A stretch of 63,910 bases of DNA, the filler included, from Octopus bimaculoides (lineage: Eukaryota): NCBI RefSeq assembly GCF_001194135.2. It is 4 parts of 4 records of this genome, joined end to end, with 100 filler letters (N's around TTAATTAATTAA, not from the genome) between each part and the next. Parts side by side here need not be neighbours in the genome. Positions count along the whole stretch, not along the records: positions 31,579 to 62,793 come from NC_068983.1; 3 more parts are not named here. One strand, given 5' to 3'. The stretch's first letter is position 1, and each line of letters starts with the position of its first letter. A model generated the notes under the pieces. That model had not been told where the DNA came from. It saw nothing but the letters and a program-made list of their open reading frames with translations, and made no database searches. Shown here piece by piece: positions 32,580 through 62,793 of this stretch. The position numbers were made by a program, and so were the translations under genes.

Positions 32580-32930
32580 ACCTGTGCGGGTGACACGTAA
32601 AATACACCATTTCGAGCGTGGCCGTTGCCAGTAAGACATTCGAGCGAGATTGTTGCCAGTGCCGGTGGACTGGCTCCTGTGCAGGTGGCACATAAAATAC
32701 ACCATTTCGAGCGTGGCCATTGCTAGTACCGCCTGACTGGCCTTCATGCCGGTGGCATGTAAAAGCACCCACTACACTCTCGGAGTGGTTGGCGTTAGGA
32801 AGGGCATCCAACTGTAGAAACTCTGCCAATTCAGATTGGAGCCTGGTGCAGCCTTCTGGCTCACCAGTCCTCAGTCAAACCGTCCAACCCATGCTAGCAT
32901 GGAAAGCGAACGTTAAACAATGATGATGAT
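32580..32930 (+). mobile_element. RTE LINE 3'UTR end with tandem subrepeats
   Basis: High similarity to 1-324. Repeated CACCATTTCGAGCGTGGCC unit and a GAT tail. Confidence 0.85.
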
Positions 32931-34162: not shown

Positions 34163-35694
34163 CATTTAATGAGGGATGATATTGAAGCCATATCTATTCA
34201 TTCCCCATCACTCTACCTCTTTCACACATCATAATGCCTATGTATAAAGGATTTCATTGTATCTGTACCCAATACACTCTGCCATCATTCTCTCTTCCCA
34301 GGCCTCATCATCTCTAACATTCTCTATCTTTATTGATAGGCATTGCTCTTTCTATCACTCTCTCACTCCACTTATAATCTTGTTCCTTTAATCTACATAA
34401 CATGGTTTTTCTTGTCATTGTTCTCTCTGATATTCACTTTCTGGCTTATGTTGCTTTGAACTAATGAATCCACCAGTGAGTAGTGAGGACTCTCTAGTCT
34501 TACATTGCAGAAGGCAACATCACTAATGCTGGTGCTGCTATGAAATATATCCAATACACTCTATAAAGTGGATGTGGAATGAACAGGGACAACATGGGGT
34601 TGAGAAAACTCTTTAGTGTTAAGAACAGGGTGACCTCTTCAACAAAAATGAATGATCCTTGTAACCCATTATCTCTGCTTGCCAACCACCAGTTTACATA
34701 GTATACTACCAACAATAGTAGAGTTGCCATGTACCCTGAAGATTTGAGTCCTTGCTATTCTGTAAAATGTTTGTTCATTTAGGATTGCTTGACTGAGGAG
34801 ATGAACAGAAGTGACAGGTGTGATGGAAGAATGAGGATGAGTGGGAGAGAAACGAGAGAGTGATGGTTGAAATGAATGGGTTGTTAGATTGGTGTAAGTT
34901 ATAAGAAAGTGATAAATACAAGAGCAGTGGATTATGGAGCAGGTGATCTAAGAGGAGAGTATAGACGAAGTAATGGTAGATATTCCTTGGGGATATTCCT
35001 TGGGGTGAGCAAGAAAGTTAGGTAACTATCATGAGAGGGCAGGGTTGATTATTGGAGAGATGAGAGGGCCAAATTGATCTAGTAACTCTGAGCATAATGC
35101 AGTATGGAGGAGTGATCTACTGCCTTTTGTCTCACTGACAACCTGGTGCAAAGAGCGTGAAAAGGTGTTAGAGTATTAGAGAGGTGAGAAACAAGCATGA
35201 ATGATAGTAATGAGCAGTGGAGGCATGAGTGATAAGTAGGGGTGATAGGAATACTCATTATTCTGAGATGTTCAAGGGAACATAAGAGGATAGAGCAATG
35301 ACAGAAGGCATTGCGATAGTGATGTCAGACAAAGAGACAAGATGATTGGATAAAAGGAGCATGAGTAAGATGGCAGTACAGGAAAGGGTGGTGTGAAGGT
35401 AGATTGTAAGGTAGTCTTTTTATATACAGGCACAAAGTCAAATGTGCAATTGGTGCTTACACTGCACTTGTGCATCTGGCTTATGTTGCTTTGAGAGAGT
35501 GGTAGAAAGAGCAATGCCTATCAATAAAGATAGACAATGTTAGAGATGATGAGGCCTGGGAAGAGAGAATGATGGCAGAGTGTATTGGGTACAGATACAA
35601 TGAAATCCTTCATACATAGGCATTATGGTGAGTGAAAGAGGTAGAGTGATGGGGAATGAATAGATATGGCTTCAATATCATCCCTCATTAAATG
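34163..35694. repeat. 203-bp inverted repeat (34163-34365 / 35492-35694) in an RNASEH2C intron
   Basis: Direct base-by-base comparison gives about 5 mismatches. Confidence 0.92.
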
Positions 35695-39075: not shown

Positions 39076-41435
39076 CTCCTACTCCCCAATCCTGTCCTCT
39101 TGGCTATGTGCCACTGTATCATTGCTCTCTGCTAGCCCCTGACCTGTGTGTTCCACCCACACGTAACAAACCAATCTACATCACATCTCTTCCTTACATT
39201 TCTTCTTTCATACACTGTGCCTAGCTCTCACTCTTCAATCTGATCCTTACAGCCTGATACTCTGTATCATTGCTATCTAGTAGCCTCCTGATTCTATATA
39301 TACCCAAGATTTTGCCACTCACCATCCCCCTGTACTCTTTAATCACACTTCCTTTGCAATATCTTGCCACTTATATTATGCCACCATCTATATCTCTCTT
39401 CCTTTACTCAACCACCCCATTTATATTCTTGATTTTTACATCCAGCTGTAAAAATCCTGCCAAACAGTCACAGAAGTCTGGTGCAGGCTTCTGCCTGGCC
39501 GCCTCTTGTCAAACCATTCTACCCATGCTAGCATGGAAGGCAGATGCTAGACGATGATGATGATGATGATGACTTATTTCATCATCATCGTTTAACATCC
39601 GTTTTCCATGCTGACATTTATTGGATAGTTTGACTGAGGTCTGGAGAGCCAGCAGCTGCACCAGGCACCAATCTGATCTGGCAATGTTTCTACAGCTGAA
39701 TGCCCTTCCTAACGCCAGCCACTCAGAGTGTAGTGGGTGTTTTTTTTTTTACATGCCACCAGCACAGAGCCAGTCAGGGGGTACTGGGATTGATCACGTT
39801 CAGATGGTGCTTTTTACGTGCCACCGGCATAAGAGCCAGTCAGTGGATACTGGCATCGGCCACAATTGGTTGGGGCTTTTTACGTGCCATCGCCAGTCAG
39901 GCAGACCTGATGAGAGAAAGAGAGAGAGAGAGAGAGAGAGCAACAGAAGCAGTATTAATACCAAAATGTAAAATATTCACCACTTAAAAGTAGATGTTGT
40001 ATTAGAACACACAATACTGTAATAATTACCAAGAAAGAAACTCTCATTTTGGTTTTACAGTGCATAAAAGCACATCATTGTTATCGCCACCAATTCCTCT
40101 CCCAGCACTGCAATATTGTGTGATTTCAGTCATTTGACTGGAGCACAGCCTTAAAAGGTCTAGTCAAATAAATCAATCCCAGTACTCATTTTTTAAGTCA
40201 GGAGATGTAAACAAACCAACACTTGTCAAGCAGTAGGAAGACAAAGATAAAGGCACAGACACACACAAACATAACAGACTTTCATACAGTTTCCATCGAT
40301 CGAATTCACTCACAAGGCATTGGTCAGCCTGAAACCATATAGTTGAAGAAATTTGCCCAAAGTGAAATGCAGTAAGACTGAACCCAAGATCATGGAGTTG
40401 CAAAGCTAGCTTCTTATCTACACAGCTATGTCTGCGCCTTTGTCCAGAAAATATCAACAGCATAAACAATATACTATATTTTCTGATATATTGTTCTCTA
40501 TCCATGAATATGGTTAAATTTCAAAACTTGAATCATCATCATTTAGTGTCTGCTTTCCATGCTGGCATGGGTTAGATGGTTTGATTGAAACTGGTAAGCT
40601 GGAGAGCTGCACCAAGTTCCAGTCTGATTTTGCATGGTTTTTACAGCTAGATACCCTTTCTAATGCCAACCAATCCAAGAGTGTAATGGGTGCTTTTTAT
40701 GTGTTACTAGCATGGGTGCCAGTTACATGACACAGACATCAGCCACCACTATAACTTCACTTGGCTTGATGTGTCTTCTCAAGCATGGCATATTGCCAAA
40801 GGTTTTGATCACCCGCCATCACCTCAGCGGGACCCAACATTCGAAGATCATGCTTCACCACCACATCTCATGTCTTCCTGGGTCTGCATCTTCCACAGGT
40901 CCCCTCCACAGTCAGAAATCGACACTTCTTAAAACAGCTGTCCTCATCTATAAACAAGGTTTACTAAAATTTTCTGCATTGTAGTTGAGAGGGTTCATCA
41001 TCTCGGTTGTTGCTAATATCTTCAGGATGAGGACCCTGAGTTTCTTAATCCACATTTATTTTAGAAACATCAATTCATATACTGAAGAGCATCTTTACAA
41101 ATGGAAGGTTTTCCTATTTCTAATGAAAGGGTAGCTTGGTTACGTGTCCAACTCCTTTTTATCCTTACTTGCACCCTCTAAACTTGTTGAGTCTAGAATC
41201 TTATCAAAATCTTCAAATTCAGTAAAAGCCAACACTTTGGATTTGAAGAATTTTCAGTATTTTTGACAGCTGCAGCAAGCCTCTTACAAATGAACTGTCG
41301 CATAGCCATCATATATTGATCTAAAAAAAAAATTTTTTTAATTAATAGAAGTTTGAGTTACCTGCAAATGCATTTTCTGTTTTTTTCCCCTTATTTTACT
41401 ATTTAAATATTGAACAAATTCTTGTGTTTTTCCAG

Positions 41436-42156: not shown

Positions 42157-42769
42157 ACTACAGATTCCTCTGCAAATTTAAGATGTATAGAAATCTCGCT
42201 TTATGAGACACTATCATATATTAAATTCAAATTATGACAAACGTAAATAAACAAACGAAGTTTGCTTTTAGAAGTGTTGAGATGTCTTAGAAAGTTAAAG
42301 AAGTGATTTTAAATTCTCAATCGCAATATATANNNNNNNNNNTTGTAAGCACAATTTATATAATTTGTTGTGGTTGTTTGGAACTTCCGCATTGGATGTT
42401 CCACGTCCAATTGGATGCTTAACCTCAGCAAATGATCGGGGGTCACTTTATTACACTGTTACAGAGATCAAATGCCTGAAGTTGGACAAATGATGAAACT
42501 TTTTATAAATGTGTTCAGAGAAAAATAGACAGAGAGCAAATGGTGTAGGGGAAGAGGAAAAGAGATGGGATTATAATTCAACAAAAATGGAGAAAAGTAT
42601 AATGGACAGCAGTAAAAGGATACAAAATTAAAAAAGCTATAAATACAAAATAGAGAAAATTAAATATATATATACACACACATACTGGATTACCTGTGAC
42701 CTGTTGGGTCACCGGGTAAGTCTGAGTTTCCCAGCAACAGAGTTTTGTTTCATAGGGATCTATTTTCTT

Positions 42770-43945
42770 TTCCAGTGATGACCTTGCTCTAATAGCTGAG
42801 TCACTGCCAGAACTAGAAATGAAGTTTAGGGTGTGGAAGCAAGTACTAGAATTGAAGGGCCTTCAAGTTAACCTAGCAAAAACCAATGTCTGAGTAAGTA
42901 GGAAGACTGACAAATCACAAACTTCTTCAGGTAGATGGCTCTCCTCAATCTGTAGAAAAGGCGTGGGTAGAAACTCCATACGATATACCCAGTGTAAGCT
43001 ATGGACACATAAAAGGTGCAGCAATATCAAAGGAAGGTTAACTGGGAAGATAGTTTTTGTGTGTGGCAGATGTAAAGGAGCAATAAACATTGAAAATGTA
43101 CAGAAAACAGATTCCATCACTTGCCAGGGGGAAAAACTAGAAGTAGTTGATAGCTTCCACTACCTAGGCAACCAAGTCTGTAGTGGGGTAGGGTTGCTCT
43201 GAGAGTAAAGCGGCTAGAATAAGAATAGCCTAGGCAAAGTTCAGGGAGCTCCTATCTCTGCTGGCAACTAAGGGCCTCTCGTTCAGGATGAAAGGTAGAC
43301 TGTAAGTTGCATGTGTGCAAACTGCCGTGCTACACGGCAGTGAAACATGAGCCATGACTGCTGAAGACATGCGTAGGTTTGAAAGAAATGAAGCTAGTAT
43401 GCACCACTGGATATGTAATGTCAGTGTGCATATACGACAGAGTGTGAGCACCCTGAGAGAAAAGTTGGACATAAGAAGCATCAAATGTGGTGTGCAAGAG
43501 AGATGACTGCAGTGGTATGGTCATGTGTTACATATTGATGAGGGCAGGTGTGTGAGGAAGTGCCACTTCCTAACTGTGGAAGAGGTAGACCCAGGAAGAC
43601 ATAGAATGAGGTGGTGAAGCATGGTCTTCGAATTTTGAGCCTCACAGAAGTAATAACAGGAGGCCGAGACTTTTGGAGATATGCTGTGGTTGAGAAGACC
43701 TAGCAACTAAAGTGAGATCGCAGCCATGGCTGATGCCGGTGTTGCATGTCTGGCCCATTTAAGTGTACCCTGGCATGTAAAAAGCACCCACTCCACTCAG
43801 GGTGGTTGGTGTTAGGAAGGGCATCCAGCTGTAGAAGCATTGCCAGATCAGGTTGGAGCCTGGTGCAGCCACTGGCTCTCCAGACCTCAGTCAAACCGTC
43901 CACCCTATGCCAGCATGGAAAATGGACATTAAACGATGATGATGT
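42770..43945 (+). mobile_element. RTE-clade LINE 3' portion (RT C-terminus, 3'UTR, GAT tail)
   Basis: DDLALIAESL...KGLQVNLAKT, Cys/His-rich insert, YLG, LHGSET, LQWYGHV, GRPRKT. 3'UTR ends in (GAT)n. Confidence 0.9.
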
Positions 43946-45121
43946 TATTTCACATGCTTTCAACGAGGTGGTGCACCAGCATGACCGCAGCCACCTGGCT
44001 GAAACCCATAAATAAAAAATTTTAAAAATCTTGTGTAAATGGCTCCTTTCCCCAGAAAGGAAAGATTTGGTTGCTATTTCTTGCACACCCTACTACCACA
44101 TAACAGGTATTTCTGATTCTTTGTCGCAAATAGCTGCTACATGGTAGCATGGTGTACTAGAAATAGCAGCAAAATCTTTGGAGGTTAGATACGTTGAATG
44201 CACTCAAAAAATACCTATGGAAAAATAAGTCATTTTGACTTTAAAATATTTTTTAGATATGTCAAAATAATTTTTTGTAATGGTACTCACTTGAAATCAA
44301 TTAAAAAAACGTTAAAACATTGTCTGTTTAAAGAAAGCTAAAATATAAATACTTACTGTACAAACAACTTACATTTTTGAAATCACATTCACTTTAAAAT
44401 ATTTCTAAATGATTAAAATGTGTTTAACAAAAGCGAAAATAGTAACATTTACCATAAAAAAACAAATCGTATTTTTTTGTTTGTCAAGTCAGTGTCTAGT
44501 CGAAAGGTAAGAGTTTCTTCCCTTTTGGGATTAAATTCTTTTCGGAATATTTTCCCATTATGCACCGTTTTGGGTATTTATACCTTGAAACCCCTATCTC
44601 CACAACCACTTGTCTGATTTACAAGAAATTTGTTTTCTGTTTGTATTTACATTTCAGAGGGAACTTAATTCATAATATTTTCCTATTCGCCAGTTTGGCT
44701 GGGTAACATTGCAAACAAAATTCAAGCTGACTTTTAATGTATTATAGATATATAGAGGCAAATCAGAGAAAATATGACAAAAAAAAAAATAGTGGGAAAG
44801 ACAGGCACTGAAAACGTGTTTTGTAATAGTTAAATTTTTAAAAGAAAATTAAAGAGTTGAAAATGGATAAGCACTAATTGAGACAGACAGATGGTTACTG
44901 GAAAATAAATATACACTCAAATATTCAAGAACATTATGGTATGAGCAAGTTGTGACCTTACTCATGGTGGGAACTATCCCATAAACATTTAGACAGCATA
45001 GCTGCCAACAGATCACATTGTTTCAGTGAGACTTTGTATAAATACATATAGTTAAGTACAAAGGTATAGATTCACACATATATACTTGCATATATAGATA
45101 ACACTAAATTTAAAACCCTCG

Positions 45122-45869: not shown

Positions 45870-46036
45870 TTTTTCACGCAGCTATCCTCATCCATTCTCA
45901 CCACATGTCCATACCAGCGCAATCGTCTCTCTTGCACACCACAACTGATGCTTCTAATGTTCAGCTTTTCTCTCAAGATACTTACACTCTGACGGGTATT
46001 CACATTGACATTACACATCCAACGGAGCATACTGGC
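45870..46036 (-). mobile_element. RTE LINE fragment between a gap and the mariner
   Basis: MLRWMCNVNV...VQERRLRWYGHVVRMDEDSCVKKC. Confidence 0.85.
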
Positions 46037-46053
46037 TTATATATATATATATA

Positions 46054-47213
46054 TTGGGTCATCCCATAAATAATGCAGTTTTTTATATTTCTTTTATTTT
46101 TCGAAATTAAAATATACTCTCCTTCATTTTCTACAATGCTCTTCCATCTATCTGGTAGACTTGCAAAGCCCCTCTTCCAGAATTCACTTGTCCATAATGA
46201 AAAATACTTCTCCAGTACTGTTCTGACTTTGTCTAGAGAATTCATATTTTTTCTGTCCAAATTATTTTGAAGACTGTGGAATAAATGATAATCAGATAGG
46301 GTAATGTCTGGTAAATATGGTGGGTGTGGCATCGTTTCCTATTCAAACTACCCCAGCCTTTTGAATGTCATCCTTGCTGTATGTGGTCAGGCATTATCCT
46401 GATGGAAGAACACCTTTTGTCTTGAAACCAAAGAGGGTTTTTCTTCCAGCGCTGACTTAAGCTGCTTGCAGTAGACCTCCTTTGTTATTGTTTGGTTTGG
46501 GTTTCAAAGTTCAAAGTGGACTAAACCTTTCATATCCCACCAAACAGATAACAACACCTTACGTGAGTGAAGACCTTCTTTAGCCTGGGGTGCTGGTGTT
46601 TCTCCTTTCCCTACTCACTGTCTTCAGTGCTTGACATTTTTATCGAGAATCTATTTCTCATCACTATTCGGTCCAAAAAAAGCTTCATTCATGAGCTGTG
46701 ACAGCAAAGAAGAGCACATATTCACTCTCTGCACACGATTAGACTGAGAAAGTTTGTGAGGAACCCATTGACCCAATTTGCTGGCTTTTCTGATGGCAGA
46801 CAGGTATTGATGAATGGTTGAATGACCTACTCCTAGCTTCTCTGCTAGTTATGATGAGATTTTGTCCCACCATAGTTTGTATGACATCCTCGTTGAGCTC
46901 TACTGATCTTCTAGGTTGTTTCCTGCTCGGAATTTCTGAAACCAGTGTTGACACTGGCTTAAGCATATTGTCCGATCCCCATATACTGCTTTAACATTCC
47001 TTCTATTTTCCATTGCATTGTTGCCTTTATCAAACTCATAAAGCAAAATATGCTCCTTTGTCACTTTCATTATAGTTTTGAAAAATAACTTTAAATCGAA
47101 CTGCACTCTTCAAAGCTTGCTCTAAGAATAAAGTACAAGGTAAAATTACTACCTGTTTTTATAGCAAGTTGATGCAGGTAGTTTATCCCTCTGACTTTTA
47201 TGGGATGATCCAA
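46054..47213 (-). mobile_element. Near full-length Mos1/Hsmar-type mariner, transposase pseudogene
   Basis: TIR TTGG(G/A)TCATCCCATAAA at both ends with TA flanks. Minus-strand fragments LLYEFDKGNNA...WFQKFRAG and HPPYLPDITLSDYHLFHSLQN...LPDRWKSIVENEGEYI. Confidence 0.92.
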
Positions 47214-49608: not shown

Positions 49609-50075
49609 ATCATCATCATCATCATCATTGTCGTTTAACGTCCACTTTCCATGCTAGCATGGGTTAGATGATTGAAATGGTGTATTTTATGTGCCACCTG
49701 CACAGGAGCCAGTCCATCGGCACTGGCAACGATCTCGCTCGAATGTCTTTTCATGTGCCAGAAAGGCGACGTTGGTAACGATCAACGGCCACGCTCGAAA
49801 TGGTGTATTTTACGTGTCACCTGCACAAGAGCCAGTCCATTGGCACTGGCAACGATTTCGCTCGAATGTCTTTTCATGTGCCACTGGCACAAGTGCCAGG
49901 AAGGCGACGTTGGTAACAATCACGCTGGAGCTGTATACGTGCCACCGGCACGGAAGCCAGACAGCTGCTCTGGCAACGATCGCGTTCGGACAGTGCTCTT
50001 AGTGCTCCACTGGTACAGGTGCCATCATGATTTCGCTTTCGCTTGCCCCAACAGGTCTTCGCAAGCAGAGTTTAG
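49609..50075 (-). mobile_element. RTE LINE 3'UTR end with duplicated subrepeats
   Basis: CAT tail at 49609. Two copies of AAATGGTGTATTTTA(T/C)GTG(C/T)CACCTGCACA(G/A)GAGCCAGTCCAT...CTCGAATGTCTTTTCATGTGCC. Confidence 0.8.
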
Positions 50076-53410: not shown

Positions 53411-56232
53411 TGTGTCTAGGATATCTTTGTCATTTCATGTAGTTTATAATTTTTTTTAGTACTTAATGAATTTCAAACTCATCGATATAACTGTGCTTGG
53501 CCATAAATACAGGTGCATTTAAGAAAAACAAGCTTTCAATGCACATGTAATTACCTGAACTGTGAAGTTTGTTAGTCCATAGGAACTAATATTTGGAGTA
53601 GTGTTCATTATAGATTAAAGGACACACATCTATAATCCCAAATTAACCGATAAGAATTGATTTTTAAATTTTAAAATTCCCACAAATTTATTTTCAAATT
53701 TATCAAATCATGTGGGATTTACAAAGTGGTGGCCATACTGGAATGTCTACTTTCTTTTAAAAATAATAACGGGAAAATTCAATGAAAAAAAATAGGGCAT
53801 AATTTTTCCATCACAATAACCACAACAGTTAATATGGGTTTCCATAGAGTGGTCATAAGAGTAAGTGTAGAGAGCAGACAATCTCTGCTGTTAACATTAA
53901 TTTCCGTCCTAGACGTAGAAAGAAGACATTAACGTAGTCATACGAAAATAAAACAACGAAATATATTGCTATTTTTAGTATGATTATAGTTATTAGAAAA
54001 TGTGATTATTAAAGTTTGTAGCATTGGATAAATTATGTGGAGAAATGAAAATTATTTTTGTAGATGAAATACTATCCAATATCTTATTTTCAAGTAGAGT
54101 AGGCATTCTGAGAATGAGGTACGTCTTTTAATATTTACTGAATAAAAAAAAATTGTACTCAGAAATAGTTTAACTTCGAAAAGTACGTTTTATGTTTAAT
54201 CAATAATATGAAGAATGCAAGCTTCGTAATATGTTCAATCGCTGGTAATTTTCATTATCTTGAATTAAAATTCAAGAACACGAAAGCTAATTATGAAGAA
54301 AAGAAACTAATTTAATTTGATGTTAATGCTTATTTCACACCTACGATATACTTAAATAGATTTTCAATGGAATAGTTTTTGTGTCATTACTTTCTTTTTA
54401 TTTTTGTAGTAGAAACATTTTCAACTGCTTCTAAATGAGAATTGTTTTGAACATAAAATGAATAACGCTTTTTTCTTCTGAGAGTATTTTCTGCACTCAG
54501 GATTAGCTTTGAAAGGGAGATAAGTCCAGGGAGTGTTCTCTTTTTTCTACTTACCTCCCTTGCAAGTAACCTATAGGAATGAATTCGATGAATTAGTTAA
54601 AGCATTGATTTCTTTCAAACAAATAGTCCTATATTTTTATAGAAGAGGAAAATTGGAATATTGTTTCCAAACAGCAGCACCATAAGTGGACCGAAATAGC
54701 ACCAACTGGGTTACGCAGTCAACTTCGGGCTTTAACTTTTAAATTCAGTATCTACTATCCGTAAATTGTTACTGGACGATGTGTGATCCTTGTTATGAGT
54801 AACGTAAGGTGGTCTAGTTTGAGTTTTCCTATTTTGACTCTTATCACTTGGCATATGTCATTTCATGTTACTTTGACGCTTTACAAAATTCAGTTCAGTG
54901 TCCTATGTTTCTGGAACTTTTGCTACTCATAACTACAGATAATATACGGATTATGTGCGTGACATGACTTGTAAAATCCTGCTGGTGAAAAATACTGGCT
55001 ATTCCCAACAGAACATCTTTCTGGAATTCCCTTCTCGTCAATCTTGTTGTTGTTGAGCAGATCTGTTATAAAAAGCCTTCCAGCCGTGATCATTCCATCA
55101 TTTTGTATATTAAGGATTACATTGTGTTCTTTTATAGAGTGTGATTTGAGCGCATTTGGCTGCTTTTGCAAGCGAACTGAGCGACGACGTAGACGCTCCC
55201 TTCCACCGTGACCTTTTTTCATGTAAACGTTAATTTACAGATGCTTAAGCTGAACTGAATATCATGCTGGAGTTAAACAGAGATGACTGGCTATCAAAAA
55301 TCAAGTCCAAACGATAAAACTATTGAGTCTAACTCTGTATTCTATGCTTGACTGCAAAATCCAAATTAGTTGGTGTCATGTGTCTGTAAATCAGATGGGA
55401 CTCTTGCTGTCAAGAGATCTCTTAAACTCTGTTAATACCTCCATCTGCTGCATTGGAAAACATATAAGGTCATTGGTCAATAATGCGTCCCTAATATGGA
55501 ACCAAAACTGACTGCAACACAATTCTCAAAGTATCCAGAACAATTTAAGACGAAGGCTGACAACTTCATATTTTCCAAAAATTAGAAAAGTTCTCTGTTT
55601 GAATCCCTGCAAAACTAGTCTTTGGGCCAATAAACAAGCTCACACCTCAAAAATTGTTACAGAAATATTCTCAGTGAAGAACATAATTTCCTGTTATTAC
55701 TTAAAGCACTAAAGCAGTGAGCTGGCAGAATCATTAACATGCTGGGCTAGATGCTTCATTTGTTTTTGCATTCTGAGTTCAAATTCCGTTAAGGTTGACT
55801 TTGCCTATCATTTTTCCAAGGTTGATAAAATATGTACCAGTTGAGCACTGGGGTCAATGTAATCGATTTAACCCTTACCCCAAAATTTGCTAGCCTTGTG
55901 CCAAAGTTTTAAACCATTATAACTAAAAGATCAAGACTAAATTTGCAGTGTATTTAAACATTCAACAATGCCCACTCTCACACACATGACATAGGTCTTC
56001 GTTCTTCCCTAACTTTATTTAATTCTACCATCATCCACACACAGCCGAGATATCACTTTTTGTGAGTCAGTTCACTAAGTTGTAAGGAGTATATACTAGA
56101 TAGCACATCATGAGTAAATGTTACCAAAGATAGACTGGTTTCTTATTCAGATGAAGATTTGACTTTTATGTCCTTAATGCCATGAAATTAAAACTAAGCA
56201 CCTGTCTTTAAAATCACCAAGGCTTAGGAAAC

Positions 56233-57750
56233 ATCATCATCATCATTTAACATCTGCTTTCCATGTTGTCATGGGTTGGATGGTTTGACTGAGGACTGGC
56301 GAGCCAGAAGGTTGCACCAGGTTCCAATCTGATCTGGCAATGTTTCTACAGCTGGATACTCTTCCTAAGGCCAACCACTCCGAGAGTGTAGTGGGTGCTT
56401 TTATGTTCCACCAGCACGAAGGCCAGTCAGGTGGTACTGGCGATGGCCATGCTCAAAAGGTGTTTTTTTATGTGCCACCTGCACAGGAGCCAGTTCAGCA
56501 GCACTGGTAACGACCACGCTCGAATGGTGCTTTTTACGTGCCACCAGCCTGGGAGCCAGTCAGCGGCCCTGGCAATGATCATGCTCAGATGGAGCTTTTA
56601 ATGTTCCACTGGCATGCATGCCAATCAGGTGGTACTGTCATTGGCCATGTCAGCGATTTTGATTTCACTTACCTCAACAGGTCTTTGCAAACAAATTTTA
56701 TCGTCCAATGAATGAAGGATACTCATAAGTGGACTGGTTAAACACCACTGGCATAGGTCTCACTTGGCTTGTCGGGTCTTCTCAAGCACAGCATATCTCC
56801 AAAGGTCTCAGTCACTAGTCATTGCCTTGGTGAGGCTCAATTTTCGAAGGTCGTGCTTCACTACCTCATCCCAGGTCTTCCTGGGTCTATCTCTTCCACA
56901 GGTTCCCTTAACTGCTAAGGTGTGACACTTTTTCACACAGCTGTCCTCATCCATTCACAACACATGACCATACCAGCACAGTCATCTCTTTTGCACACCA
57001 CATCTGATGCTTTTTAAGTCCAACTTTTATCTCAGTGTGCTTACACTCTGTCGAGTATGCACACTGACATTACACATCCATCGGAGCATACTGGCTTCAT
57101 TCCTTGCAAACTTACACATGTCCTCAGCAGTCACAGCCCATGTTTCACTGCTGTGTAGCATGGCTGTTTGTACACATGCGTCACACAGTCTACCTTTTGC
57201 ACTGAGCAAGAGGTCTTTTGTCACCAGCAGAGGTAAGAGCTCTCTGAACTTTGCCCAGGCTATTCTTATTCTAGCAGCTACACTTTCAGAGCATCCACCC
57301 CTGCTTATTGACTTGGTCACTTAGGTAATGGAAGCTATCAGCTACTTGTAGTTTTTCTCCCTAGAATGTGACAGAAGCTGTTTTTAGTGTTTATTGCTCC
57401 TGAGCATCTGCCACATACAAAAACTATCTTCCCAGTTAGCCTTCCTTTGATATTGCTGCACCTCTTATGTGTCCATAGCTTACACTGGGTACATCTTATG
57501 GAGTTTCTACCTATGCCTTTTCTACAGATCGAGCAGGGCCATCTACCTGTAGTTTGTGATTTGTTTGCCTTCCTACTTTTTAAGACTTTGGTTTTAGCTA
57601 GGTTGACTCTAAGGCCCTTTGCTTCGACTCCTGAAACTTTTCCTCTAGTTCTGATAGTGACTCAGCAATTAGTGCAAGGTCATCGGCATAGAAGAGCTCC
57701 CAGGGGCATCCTGTCTTGAATTCCTCTGTTATTGCCTGAATAAGAAGGGG
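56233..57750 (-). mobile_element. RTE-clade LINE 3' portion including YADD
   Basis: GCPWELFYADDLALIAESL, WPCSICRKG...CTQCKLWTHKRC, ARIRIAWAKFRELLPLL, LHSSETW. 3'UTR and CAT tail at 56233. Confidence 0.92.
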
Positions 57751-58454
57751 CTGAGGACTGATAATTAATTCATTTAGACTGCTAATGTAATTTATTAAAG
57801 TGGAAATGAAAATTAAATATGTTACTGACATCCCATTCCAGCAGGAAATATATCCAGTCTTCTTCCTTAAGAGGAATTACCAAAGTTTCCATGAAATAAG
57901 TACTATGCATTGTACTCAATCAATTCAGTTGACCATTCCCCTCCCCTACAAATTGGTAGCATTGTACCAATGTGAGAAATCCTTATCACTGTTCACCACT
58001 ACTATCATCTCCGTTTCTATCCAACTTGTTTGAATGTCTACCAGACTAAGAAGCACAAGTTATCAAATATTACAAAAGAAAATCTGAAATTAATTTTAAA
58101 ATTTTGCATTATTAGCCAGTTATTTGGATAAATGCTATGTAAAATGAAACCGATTAAATGAAAAATGAGATGCTACAGGTATGAAAAATAAATAATAAAT
58201 TGCTATAGAAATATTCCCACTCACAGTTATCTAGTGGCAATTTGATATTTATTATAATGATAAGTAACCTAAAATACATTCATAGACTGGAGACATGTGG
58301 AGAAAGATTTGTTTTCATTCCTTCACTAATGTTTTGTTTAATATTGACTTCTAAACTTAAGGCAACTAGCTGGCAGAATCATTAGCCCACTGGGTGAAAT
58401 GCTTACCAGCATTTCATCCATCTTCATGTTTTGAGTTCAAATTCTGCCAGGGTT

Positions 58455-59512
58455 GACTTATGATCAGTGACACTCCAACCACGACCAAACTGTGTGTAAG
58501 TCCACATTATTTAGTATGTCCTTCCTATTTAAAGACAGAGAGATTTGGCGTCTATTTGTAGCAGGTCAAGCAATGTCACAGAAGCTCCCCTTGCTGGTTT
58601 CTCAAGTAATGGTTATAGTAATAGATGTGGGGGCGATCACAGCAATAGATTTTCTCAGTGTTGATAAAATAAATATCACTTGAGTACTGCTGGCCTTGTG
58701 AAACCATTATTGATTTCTAAACTTAGGCATATGCCCCCAAACTTGAGTAAGCAGACAATTAATTAAATAACACTAGTACTTTACTGGAACTAATCAACCC
58801 TCAGGAGGATGAAAAGCAAAGCTGATCATGACAGAATTTGAACTCAGGACATAAAGACACTTTTACCAAATACCACAAGGCATTTAGCTAACTAATCTAC
58901 TGATTCTTTCATTCCACTTGATATGTCACTAGAGAGAGAGAGAGCAACAGATGGCAGAATTTTGTAGTAACATCCTCCTACCAGCCATAAGTCCCTGCAA
59001 AGATAATGGACACTGAGTAAGTCATGGAAAACACAAACTTTGTGATTTAGCTTCAAGTCTTATTTAAAGTCATTTCACTCCACTTTCACAACTAAAATCC
59101 TAAAGAATGGTATGAATTTCATGCTTTTCACTTAAGCTACCTCTATAGATATCACACTTCATTCATGTTAGTAAGGAACCATTATCTTCATTTGAGTGAA
59201 CAAAATAGAAAGAACAACAAACTGTGTTGTTTCTTGTACTTTCTTCAAACTGTAGTAGTAGTAGTAGTAGTAGTGGTTATTATTGTTTAGCTCCATGTCA
59301 ACCCTGACCAAGTAGACTTATGATCAGTGACACTCCAACCACGACCAAACTGTGTGTAAGTCCACATTATTTAGTATGTCCTTCCTATTTGAAGACAGAG
59401 AGATTTGGCGTCTATTTATAGCAGGTCAAGCAATGTCACAGAAGCTCCCCTTGCTGGTTTCTCAAGTAATGGTTATAGTAATAGATGTGGGGGCGATCAC
59501 AGCAATAGATTT
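58455..59512 (+). repeat. 198-bp direct duplication (58455-58652 / 59315-59512)
   Basis: Two substitutions; 860-bp offset. Confidence 0.92.
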
Positions 59513-59872
59513 ATTGATGGCAATATTGTTAAAGTTATGGTGGTGATAGTGACAGTGGTGGTGGTGGTAGTAGCTGGTGATGGTAATGGTTACAATTATA
59601 GATGCATTGGTGAGAGATGGTGGTAGCAGCAATGTTATTTAATATATGAGTAATACTTGTGGTTGTAGTATGGGTGATACTGTGAGTAATATTGTTGGTG
59701 TTGGCGATAGTAGGTAGTAGTACTACCACTCTTAATATACACCACCACTGCCTCTACTATGGATACTACTCTTCCTTTGCTTTTTGCCTTTTACTTTCAC
59801 CTTCTACTGGTGGTATTTTCCACGTACTGAGATAGTTTGTACCTAAAAATATGACAAATGCATGGATTGATA

Positions 59873-60024
59873 CGTTATTTACATTTGACGGATATTTGTC
59901 CTCCACTTTTTGTTATTAGCCTGTTTCGGCTGATATACCCTCCAGCCTTCATGAAGTGTCTTGGGGAAATTTCGAACCTGGGTTCTCATTCCTAAGGTAT
60001 TTTTTGATGTTGTTGTTGTTATTG

Positions 60025-60072
<48 letters not shown>

Positions 60073-60132
60073 TCACTGTCTGGAATCAAACTTGGAATCT
60101 TGGGGTTAGTAGCCTGCTATTCAGGTTACTGA

Positions 60133-60169
<37 letters not shown>

Positions 60170-60325
60170 TAATATCAAAAAATACCTTAGGAATGAGAAC
60201 CCAGGTTCGAAATTTCCCCAAGACACCTGATGAAGGCTGGAGGGTATGTCAACAACAAACAAGATGAGGACAAATATCCGTCAAATGTAAATAATGTACA
60301 TAATTCCTCATCTCTTAAATATAGA
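59873..60325. mobile_element. Palindromic tRNA-head / Penelope-like-tail retroelement, copy 2 (centre collapsed, both hammerheads damaged)
   Basis: Same arms as 1035-1595 in the opposite orientation. 11-bp TSD ATGGATTGATA (59862-59872, 60326-60336). The tRNA centre is replaced by the small hairpin TATTCAG-GTTA-CTGAATA. Confidence 0.85.
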
Positions 60326-61299
60326 ATGGATTGATAGTTCAAAGATCCTGTAGTGGTGGTGGTGGTGATGACGATGATGATGATGATACTATTTTTGGTG
60401 GTGATGGTGGTGGTGGTGGTGGTGGTGGTGGTGGCAGTGATGTNNNNNNNNNNNNNNNNNNNNNNNNNNNNNNNNNNNNNNNNNNNNNNNNNNNNNNNNN
60501 NNNNNNNNNNNNNNNNNNNNNNNNNNNNNNNNNNNNNNNNNNNNNNNNNNNNNNNNNNNNNNNNNNNNNNNNNNNNNNNNNNNNNNNNNNNNNNNNNNNN
60601 NNNCATTGGTGTGGGAACATAGCAGTAGACTGATAGAAAAAAATTTGAAATAATCAGAAATACATTTTAACAAAATACTTTTTCTCAAATTTAATTATCT
60701 TCTCCCTCCTCCATTTGCCAGTTCTAATATTTTGTTCATTTTCTTTTTTCCTTTTTTCATGATTTTTCTAATATTTTTATTGTTTTAATACCACATCTAC
60801 CACCATTGCTGCCATTTTCACTTCTTTTTTTTTTTTTGATTTAATGTCATTGAGTTTTAAAACATTTACTATAATTGTTATCCTTGCTGATTCTGATGGG
60901 TATCTCTGACTATCTCTTTCTCTGTCTTTCTGTATCTCTTTCCCTCTTCCTCTCTCTCTGTCTCTCTATCTCTTTTTCTCTCTCCCTCTGTCTTTCTTTC
61001 AAAATCAGTCTATCTGAGAAATATGACACAGTACAGCAAGGAAACTTGGGTAGTAAATTCATAGGATCTGTAACAGCTGGAGTGAATGAATAGATTCGAG
61101 TCTATGCAACATTGATATAAAATGAGAGCCATGCACGAGTTGGTAAATGGGTTGAACATTGCTTACAGTCGAAAGAATGGCTATAAATTCACCAACACTT
61201 TGGAGTTATAATTCTGAATGGCACCTTTGTTCTTATGGCACTACCTGTTCATTATGACCCACTAGATTATATGAACTCTACTTAAATTTTGAATCTCAT

Positions 61300-61301
<2 letters not shown>

Positions 61302-61344
<43 letters not shown>

Positions 61345-62793
61345 GTTTAACGTCCGCCTTCCATGCTAGCATGGGTTGGACGATTTGACTGAGGACTGGT
61401 GAAACCGGATGGCAACACCAGGCTCCAATCTAATTTGGCAGAGTTTCTACAGCTGGATGCCCTTCCTAACGCCAACCACTCAGAGAGTGTAGTGGGTGCT
61501 TTTACATGTCACCCGCNNNNNNNNNNNNNNNNNNNNNNNNNNNNNNNNNNNNNNNNNNNNNNNNNNNNNNNNNNNNNNNNNNNNNNNNNNNNNNNNNNNN
61601 NNNNNNNNNNNNNNNNNNNNNNNNNNNNNNNNNNNNNNNNNNNNNNNNNNNNNNNNNNNNNNNNNNNNNNNNNNNNNNNNNNNNNNNNNNNNNNNNNNNN
61701 NNNNNNNNNNNNNNNNNNNNNNNNNNNNNNNNNNNNNNNNNNNNNNNNNNNNNNNNNNNNNNNNNNNNNNNNNNNNNNNNNNNNNNNNNNNNNNNNNNNN
61801 NNNNNNNNNNNNNNNNNNNNNNNNNNNNNNNNNNNNNNNNNNNNNNNNNNNNNNNNNNNNNNNNNNNNNNNNNNNNNNNNNNNNNNNNNNNNNNNNNNNN
61901 NNNNNNNNNNNNNNNNNNNNNNNNNNNNNNNNNNNNNNNNNNNNNNNNNNNNNNNNNNNNNNNNNNNNNNNNNNNNNNNNNNNNNNNNNNNNNNNNNNNN
62001 NNNNNNNNNNNNNNNNNNNNNNNNNNNNNNNNNNNNNNNNNNNNNNNNNNNNNNNNNNNNNNNNNNNNNNNNNNNNNNNNNNNNNNNNNNNNNNNNNNNN
62101 NNNNNNNNNNNNNNNNNNNNNNNNNNNNNNNNNNNNNNNNNNNNNNNNNNNNNNNNNNNNNNNNNNNNNNNNNNNNNNNNNNNNNNNNNNNNNNNNNNNN
62201 NNNNNNNNNNNNNNNNNNNNNNNNNNNNNNNNNNNNNNNNNNNNNNNNNNNNNNNNNNNNNNNNNNNNNNNNNNNNNNNNNNNNNNNNNNNNNNNNNNNN
62301 NNNATTTCATGTGTCACCCGCACAAGAACCAGCCCAGGGGCACCGGCAACGATCTCGCTCGAAAGATTTCAGGTGTCACCCACACACGAGCCAGTCCAGG
62401 GGCACTGGCAACGATCCCGTTCAAAACATTTCATGTGTCACCCGCACAAGAGCCAGTCCAGGGTCACTGGCAACGATCTCGCTCGAAGGACTTCGTGTGT
62501 TGCCCGCACATGAGCCAGTCCCGGGGCACTGGCAACGATCCCGTCTCGCTCAAGGCATTTTATGTGTCACCCGCACAAGAGCCAGCCAAGGGGCACCGGC
62601 AACGATCTCGCTCGAAAGATTTCATGTGTCACCCACACACGAGCCAGTCCAGGGGCACTGGCAACGATCCCGTTCAAAACATTTCATGTGTCACCCGCTA
62701 CAAGAGCCAGTCCAGGGTCACTGGCAACGATCTCGCTCGAAGGATTTCGTGTGTTGCCCGCACATGAGCCAGTCCAGGGGCACCAGCAACGAT
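61302..62793 (-). repeat. RTE 3' end whose UTR subrepeat is expanded into a ~62-bp tandem array with ABCD higher-order structure
   Basis: Monomers start at 62304, 62366, 62428, 62490, 62557, 62619, 62681 and 62744. Period-4 diagnostic variants give a 253-bp higher-order unit. A 787-N gap separates the array from the LINE tail. Confidence 0.85.

Follow-up and report, generated by a model that had tools for sequence, protein, structure and literature searches.

A lopsided hairpin lies within an 11-bp target-site duplication

The window, which is the whole stretch of Octopus bimaculoides DNA (63,910 nucleotides, filler included, with positions counted along its full length), contains a piece at 31579-62793, and within this piece a 453-bp element (59873-60325) is enclosed between two copies of an 11-bp target-site duplication (TSD). 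The element is composed of two inverted arms of about 195 bp each, both located inside the single duplication, a centre of roughly 63 nt and, on one side only, an extension of 29 nt. It has no long ORF. Its features are as follows.

59862-59872, no strand: left copy of the TSD, 11 bp, ATGGATTGATA; its final TA (59871-59872) also prolongs the inverted repeat
59873-60003, minus strand: unique part of the short (tail-less) arm, with the outward minus-strand end ...CCGTCAAATGTAAATAACG and a 14-nt indel relative to the other arm
60004-60068, no strand: (TTG)n(TTA)n microsatellite within the left arm
60069-60131, no strand: centre, non-palindromic although its outermost 15-20 nt are weakly similar; a second copy, known from a protein only, shows it conserved
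60132-60174, no strand: (AAT)n microsatellite with GAT interruptions within the right arm, mirroring the left one but shorter
60175-60296, plus strand: unique part of the long arm, common to the short arm, with the end ...GTAAATAATG
60297-60325, plus strand: tail, the 29-nt extension TACATAATTCCTCATCTCTTAAATATAGA, on the right arm only
60326-60336, no strand: right copy of the TSD, 11 bp, ATGGATTGATA

Read along the plus strand, the junctions are ...gacaaatgc ATGGATTGATA / CGTTATTTACATTTGACGG ... CCGTCAAATGTAAATAATG TACATAATTCCTCATCTCTTAAATATAGA / ATGGATTGATA gttcaaag... The insertion took place in an AT-rich target (...AAATGC/ATGGATTGATA/GTTCAAAG), with ATGACAAATGC to the left of the ATGGATTGATA site and GTTCAAAGATCC to the right of it. 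Trinucleotide arrays of the GGT/GAT type are located on either side of the insertion site (59514-59584 and 60353-60442); the right array starts 16 nt past the TSD, and an N gap (60444-60603) begins inside it. Just upstream of the element there is also a 201-nt direct repeat (58452-58652 and 59312-59512, 99% identity, 860-nt spacing), which may have arisen by tandem duplication at this site or else in the assembly.

The original prediction described this element as the second of two copies (copy 2), with one long-tailed arm and one arm that stops short, and the two arms are as described. TACATAATTCCTCATCTCTTAAATATAGA is found on the right arm only, where the sequence runs on past the matching ...GTAAATAATG (which ends at 60296), while the short arm, read outward, ends with ...GTAAATAACG (the reverse complement of 59873-59882). 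The tail is 29 nt long, or 27 nt when a TA overlap with the duplication, described below, is assigned to the arm. Neither the left flank nor any other part of the piece 31579-62793 yielded a counterpart of the tail; a resemblance of the left flank to the reverse-complemented tail (13 of 29 ungapped matches) was rejected as not above the AT-rich background. The arm/tail boundary (60284-60305) has a structure of its own: a small palindrome, ATGTACAT (60294-60301), lies precisely at the point at which the short arm stops and the tail starts, and the boundary is also located within a 9-nt direct repeat, AATGTAAAT/AATGTACAT (60284-60304). The final codon of the shared arm is an ATG (60294-60296), and its frame is open across the tail (MYIIPHLLNI). 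Folded as RNA, the element has a minimum free energy of -258.5 kcal/mol, in comparison to an average of -94 for shuffled sequences (z = -30.7).

The entire hairpin entered the site in one event

Copy 2 had been predicted to have its own 11-bp TSD, and ATGGATTGATA is indeed exact at both 59862-59872 and 60326-60336. The match is not extendable in either direction, as the neighbouring bases are c vs a on the left and c vs g on the right. Given the flank composition, the chance of finding ATGGATTGATA at one place is about 1e-6, and over 60 offsets it is about 6e-5; across the 27,371 11-mer positions of the piece, ATGGATTGATA alone has a second occurrence 400-520 nt further downstream. As the hairpin is bracketed by one exact 11-bp duplication, we conclude that the entire 453-bp hairpin, together with its one-sided extension, entered in one event and with sharp ends.

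In their unique parts the two arms are mismatched at 6 of 119 aligned nucleotides (K2P 0.052) and differ additionally by one 14-nt and one 1-nt indel. Arms which are 5% apart, combined with an intact TSD, fit the assumption that both arms were identical at the time of insertion. If so, the divergence would amount to about 0.026 per arm, and the insertion might be of the order of 7 My old (calibrated from PMC13282606, in which a Jukes-Cantor distance of 0.09 corresponds to about 25 My). The finding of 0 changes in the 22 duplicated bases is consistent with such an age.

It could also be supposed that no mobile insertion occurred here: the sequence might have been duplicated locally in inverted orientation, or the structure might be an artefact of the assembly, the flanking repeat being due to chance. 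In favour of this, the scaffold has many gaps and resembles a short-read assembly, the N run at 60444-60603 is nearby, and palindromes are notoriously difficult for assemblers (PMC8557442). However, an artefact would yield identical arms, whereas those found here are 5% apart, differ by a 14-nt indel and contain unequal microsatellites. Moreover, the exact 11-bp repeat is located precisely at both ends (p ~6e-5), and another gene model, described below, contains a second copy. We thus regard this explanation as hardly credible. An empty-site paralogue, looked for within the piece 31579-62793, was not found.

A two-nucleotide overlap weakens the proposed TATC target preference

According to the original prediction, the TSD of copy 2 starts with TATC when read outward from the short arm, and this is correct, as the reverse complement of the TSD is TATCAATCCAT. 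The predicted arm end requires a correction. The stop of the short arm is present, but the inverted repeat is actually longer by 2 nt (TA), so that 59871-59911 matches 60258-60298: the long arm reads ...AATAATG and then TA-CAT, and the short arm reads the matching ...AATAACG and then TA-TC of the duplication. Since the inverted repeat enters the TSD by TA, the arm/duplication boundary is ambiguous by these two nucleotides, and the TA shared by arm and duplication could be either an overlap or a 2-nt microhomology at the priming site. It needs to be stressed that TA represents the element's own next two bases. The idea of a TATC target preference is therefore weakened, and TC alone is left as a possible target signal. 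The chance agreement of two independent sites is about 0.005 over 4 nt and about 0.07 over 2 nt (flank sum(p^2) = 0.27).

A second copy of the repeat is contained in an octopus gene model

A blastn search with the element across 31579-62793 returned only the element itself and its own inverse, with no second copy; copy 1 of the original prediction lies outside this piece. When six-frame arm peptides were used as a query against 5.8 billion proteins, one protein was found: A0A0L8FR24 (A0A0L8FR24_OCTBM), the O. bimaculoides NUP42 gene model. Its residues 146-194 (about 48 residues) correspond to the translated arm, microsatellite (poly-Ile from ATT) and centre of another copy, and its C-terminus reads PSSGVLGKFRTWVLIPKVFFDA(I)9QVTAWNRTRNLGVSSLCS. 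The translated centre is QVTVWNQTWNLGVSSL at our locus vs QVTAWNRTRNLGVSSL in A0A0L8FR24. As the two centres differ, and as the NUP42 exons are absent from the piece, the copy in the gene model does not come from our locus. The match shows that the repeat constitutes a family in Octopus and that the centre is a part of this family.

The arm sequence CCCTCCAG/CC, at which the NUP42 model passes into the repeat, resembles a good splice acceptor, and the repeat-derived end of the model may be either an exonisation or a mis-annotated retained intron. At the two arm sites that can be compared, the centre-linked arm of A0A0L8FR24 carries the bases of our other arm (PSSGV vs our PS*SV), and the differences between our two arms look like private changes that arose after the insertion. 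It should be kept in mind that A0A0L8FR24 covers one arm and the centre only, and therefore a palindromic copy and a plain monomer are indistinguishable there.

Further searches were made for relatives of the element. A0A0L8FR24, used as a query itself, returned only itself and its cuttlefish orthologue. No protein spanning the junction of the centre and the right arm was matched at E <= 10, and neither was the tail-frame peptide MYIIPHLLNIE, for which an 11-residue match would itself score near E <= 10. A scan of the JGI metagenomes with arm 20-mers produced a sole match of 24 nt (ERZ761607 NODE_32334, 843-866), which we rejected as a copy of the element, as it is a chance match in a GC-rich, apparently bacterial coding sequence. 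Scans of GTDB contigs for the element gave no match, and its sequence strings do not occur in the literature searched.

Other repeats are present in the same piece

A second inverted repeat, unrelated to the element in sequence, is located at 34163-34365 and 35492-35694 (203-nt arms, 98% identity, 1126 nt between them). Within this structure (34163-35694) a direct repeat, GTGCATCTG, brackets the right arm plus 16 nt, and the 20-nt sequence TCTGGCTTATGTTGCTTTGA is found at 34440 and 35476. A decayed Mos1-type mariner transposase is present on the minus strand at 46000-47109, with an HTH_48 match (E = 4e-14, 46903-47109) and a C-terminal ORF (46000-46332). The 3' half of a LINE occurs in two inverted copies about 13 kb apart (42756-43577, plus strand, and 56811-57876, minus strand; 81-91% identity), with a YADD reverse-transcriptase motif, a PHD-finger-like cysteine motif and a ...RRLRWYGHV... 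tail.

The piece also contains members of a very abundant SINE-like family with the core ...CATGCTAGCATGGAAAGCGGACGTTAAACGATGATGATG... (32633-32930, 39490-39971, 43779-43960, 49609-49964, 56209-56650 and 61309-62793). This family shows a variable count of 62-66-nt tandem units (TTTTACGTGCCACC...GAGCCAGTC...), and the last of its arrays reaches the end of the piece.

The ends of the element argue against a cut-and-paste transposon and a tRNA-derived SINE

Long inverted arms, internal microsatellites and a short unique centre might suggest a derivative of a cut-and-paste DNA transposon, namely a foldback element or a long-TIR MITE, with Mutator-like elements as one candidate source. Mutator-like elements make 9-11-bp duplications, and the 11-bp duplication found here is inside this range. 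Mutator and unclassified TIR families have also been reported in octopus (PMC13282606). The termini themselves do not fit this scenario. The left one reads CGTTATTTAC... and the right one, reverse-complemented, TCTATATTTAAG..., and the inverted repeat begins only 29 nt inside the right end. The true termini inside the TSD are thus not inverted repeats, with 29 nt at one end left unmatched, and this argues against a cut-and-paste MITE. In addition, the original prediction gives a 14-bp TSD for copy 1 (outside the piece), while a DDE transposase with a fixed stagger would not vary in this respect, and no transposase relative was found. We therefore consider a foldback or MITE origin very unlikely.

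Short, abundant, non-coding and TSD-flanked sequences are also typical of the tRNA-derived octopus SINEs OR1, OR2 and OK, reportedly described by Ohshima and Okada in 1994, and the arm of our element contains a B-box-like GGTTCGAAATT. However, a tRNA-derived SINE was rejected as a candidate: ARAGORN predicted 0 genes, no Rfam tRNA was matched, there is no A box, and no tRNA-like fold surrounds the B-box-like motif. The plus strand of the element has T5/T6 runs at positions 35 and 128, and the minus strand has one at position 144. As such Pol III terminators occur in both orientations, Pol III read-through would be blocked either way, which argues against a Pol III SINE. Another candidate, the plant miRNA hairpin model MIR2606, which was the top match in Rfam at E <= 10, was rejected as well (44.8 bits vs a gathering score of 139.7), the similarity being that of a long AT-rich hairpin.

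A Penelope-like retrotransposition event is a possible source of the hairpin

A one-sided tail combined with a TSD is probably an ordinary insertion footprint of a known kind of retroelement. The reading that we favour, though it falls somewhat short of probable, is that the element is the product of one retrotransposition event of the Penelope-like (PLE) type, which left head-to-head copies of about 200 bp, similar to pseudo-LTRs (pLTRs), and no coding part; here one copy is likened to PLEs by its anatomy. This reading is proposed because the arms, the tail and the duplication match the published PLE footprint. In Adineta vaga, a PLE insert is completed by an adjacent inverted pseudo-LTR within a 9-bp duplication, and duplications of 8 bp and 10 bp accompany other cases (PMC3846280). 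A tail of 30-40 bp is often present at one end only, and an inverted 5'-truncated copy adjoins the unit (Craig et al. 2021, PMC8557442). A further reason is that an ATG ends the shared arm, with the tail open in frame, just as the end of a PLE pLTR carries the first codons of the ORF; there, the tail lengthens these codons, and a case of a 31-bp tail has been described (Arkhipova et al. 2013, PMC3846280). The low divergence of the arms, the abundance of PLEs in octopus and the poorer fit of the other classes of element speak for this reading as well.

Apart from the unique centre (see below), two observations count against this reading. Firstly, neither a PLE-type reverse transcriptase nor a GIY-YIG domain was found in the element or in the 31-kb piece, in which a six-frame motif scan gave only the LINE-type YADD. 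Secondly, no hammerhead was detected in the element (Rfam cmscan, E <= 10). Hammerheads are present in the pLTRs of canonical Penelope, Poseidon and Neptune, and absent in Naiad and Chlamys; the Naiads of cephalopods are old remnants only. Core-like halves of such a ribozyme do occur, CTGATGA at 60229 in the right arm and GGCTG-loop-CAGCC-GAAAC (GGCTG...CAGCCGAAAC) in the reverse-complemented left arm. We rejected them as a hammerhead, as these half-motifs are split between the arms, with no valid helix III, no cleavage site and no Rfam match, although they might conceivably be a decayed relic.

On the other hand, and this is the main rival reading, in line with the original prediction, the element may belong to a non-autonomous retroposon family in which the master was already a palindrome with a tail, and its hairpin RNA was copied whole by a LINE or PLE reverse transcriptase. 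The 5' end would then be set by the transcription start and the 3' end by the tail, and both ends would be common to the full-length copies, as in any family. The bracketing of the entire unit by one exact duplication agrees with this idea, and so does a unique centre with no snap-back junction, joined to the arm in the same way in the second copy (A0A0L8FR24). The 11-bp length of the duplication fits target-primed reverse transcription as well, and lengths reportedly vary among copies. Yet an RNA that folds into an almost perfect duplex of about 200 bp (-258 kcal/mol) would make a poor template for reverse transcription, the 3' end has neither poly(A) nor a simple repeat, and there is no Pol III promoter, with T5/T6 terminators in both orientations. 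The second copy is not decisive in favour of a palindromic master either: A0A0L8FR24 shows the arm, the microsatellite and the centre only, and a non-inverted monomer would encode the same protein, while at its two comparable positions there are no arm-specific diagnostic differences. All in all, a palindromic master seems rather unlikely to us.

This bears on the claim of the original prediction that the palindrome is the mobilised unit with defined ends. The part that concerns one event and sharp ends is borne out by the single exact TSD, but identical ends do not establish that the palindrome was the template. Full-length copies of any one family share their ends. In PLEs, moreover, both the inverted copies and the one-ended tail of 30-40 bp arise from the way in which the element inserts (PMC3846280, PMC8557442, PMC11167929); if reverse transcription starts at two fixed sites and both strands are extended, independent PLE events will share their ends whether or not the template is palindromic.

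A mechanism with two priming strands and two start sites can be proposed

The proposed PLE-type mechanism finds its model in biochemical work. At AT-rich sites, a PLE protein studied in vitro cut both strands of the DNA and extended them (Frangieh et al. 2024, PMC11167929), and reverse transcription begins at two adjacent internal sites, the genomic tail being the stretch between them (PMC11167929). For our locus we infer an enzyme, dual priming and two start sites of the same kind. An element-encoded GIY-YIG endonuclease would nick both strands of the AT-rich target 11 bp apart (top strand GATA^GTTC, bottom strand CCAT^GCAT), and both 3'-OH ends would prime reverse transcription on the element RNA, which could start at either of two fixed internal sites with a distance of about 29 nt between them. 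With the bottom strand as primer, the cDNA would start at the distal site and keep the tail (right arm, 60175-60325). With the top strand as primer, it would start at the proximal site, possibly aided by the 2-nt TA pairing, and give rise to the tail-less left arm. Finally, the two cDNAs would join head to head at the centre, and filling of the staggered nicks would produce the 11-bp duplication.

A more far-reaching idea is that the hairpin of 453 bp propagates itself as a non-coding "solo inverted-pLTR" element, that a palindromic RNA or a bidirectional RNA pair serves as its template, that it has reached many copies in octopus, and that its preference for a nick site (...GATA^G) is real. 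We find this unlikely. If it were true, it would define a new structural class of non-autonomous Penelope-dependent retroelement, as well as a ready source of long double-stranded RNA in a lineage with heavy RNA editing.

Implications for repeat annotation

Annotators of repeats should be cautious here, since a hairpin of this lopsided kind, with its clean TSD, may be taken for a MITE or an unusual SINE even though it bears a Penelope-like structural signature. Penelope-like retrotransposition is a class that accounts for about 7% of octopus genomes and that annotation pipelines handle poorly; in Octopus vulgaris, 190 PLE families make up 6.8% of the genome (supplement of PMC13282606). If there are many solo inverted pairs, their fixed ends would provide an in vivo read-out of the two start sites, which so far have been seen in vitro only, with a lizard element. 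Intronic hairpins may further serve as a source of splice sites, an example being the copy in the O. bimaculoides NUP42 model, and of long double-stranded RNA.

Comparison with known systems

Twin-priming inversions of L1, said to have been described by Ostertag and Kazazian in 2001, resemble our element in that cDNA is primed from both target strands and an inverted segment lies within one duplication. However, what L1 twin priming inverts is another part of the RNA, closer to its 5' end and at variable points, and the same 3' segment is not doubled with two fixed ends.

Animal (non-LTR) retrozymes (PMC7229834; bioRxiv 10.64898/2026.07.22.740005) are likewise short and non-coding, and are presumed to rely on PLE machinery. 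They differ from our element in forming head-to-tail tandems with active type I hammerheads and circular RNAs, whereas here we see a single inverted pair with no detectable hammerhead.

The likeness to endonuclease-bearing (EN+) PLEs is one of structure. There is no ORF between the repeats, and no hammerhead was detected. The centre, a unique segment of 30-60 nt, also differs from the simple palindromic junction of some PLEs. As in EN+ PLEs, on the other hand, a single insert carries terminal repeats of about 200 bp in head-to-head inversion, and one end is longer by about 30 nt (29 nt here, marginally under the published 30-40). Similarly, the repeat ends with an ATG whose frame continues into the tail, and a short TSD is found at an AT-rich target, its length being 11 bp here and 8-10 bp in the published cases.
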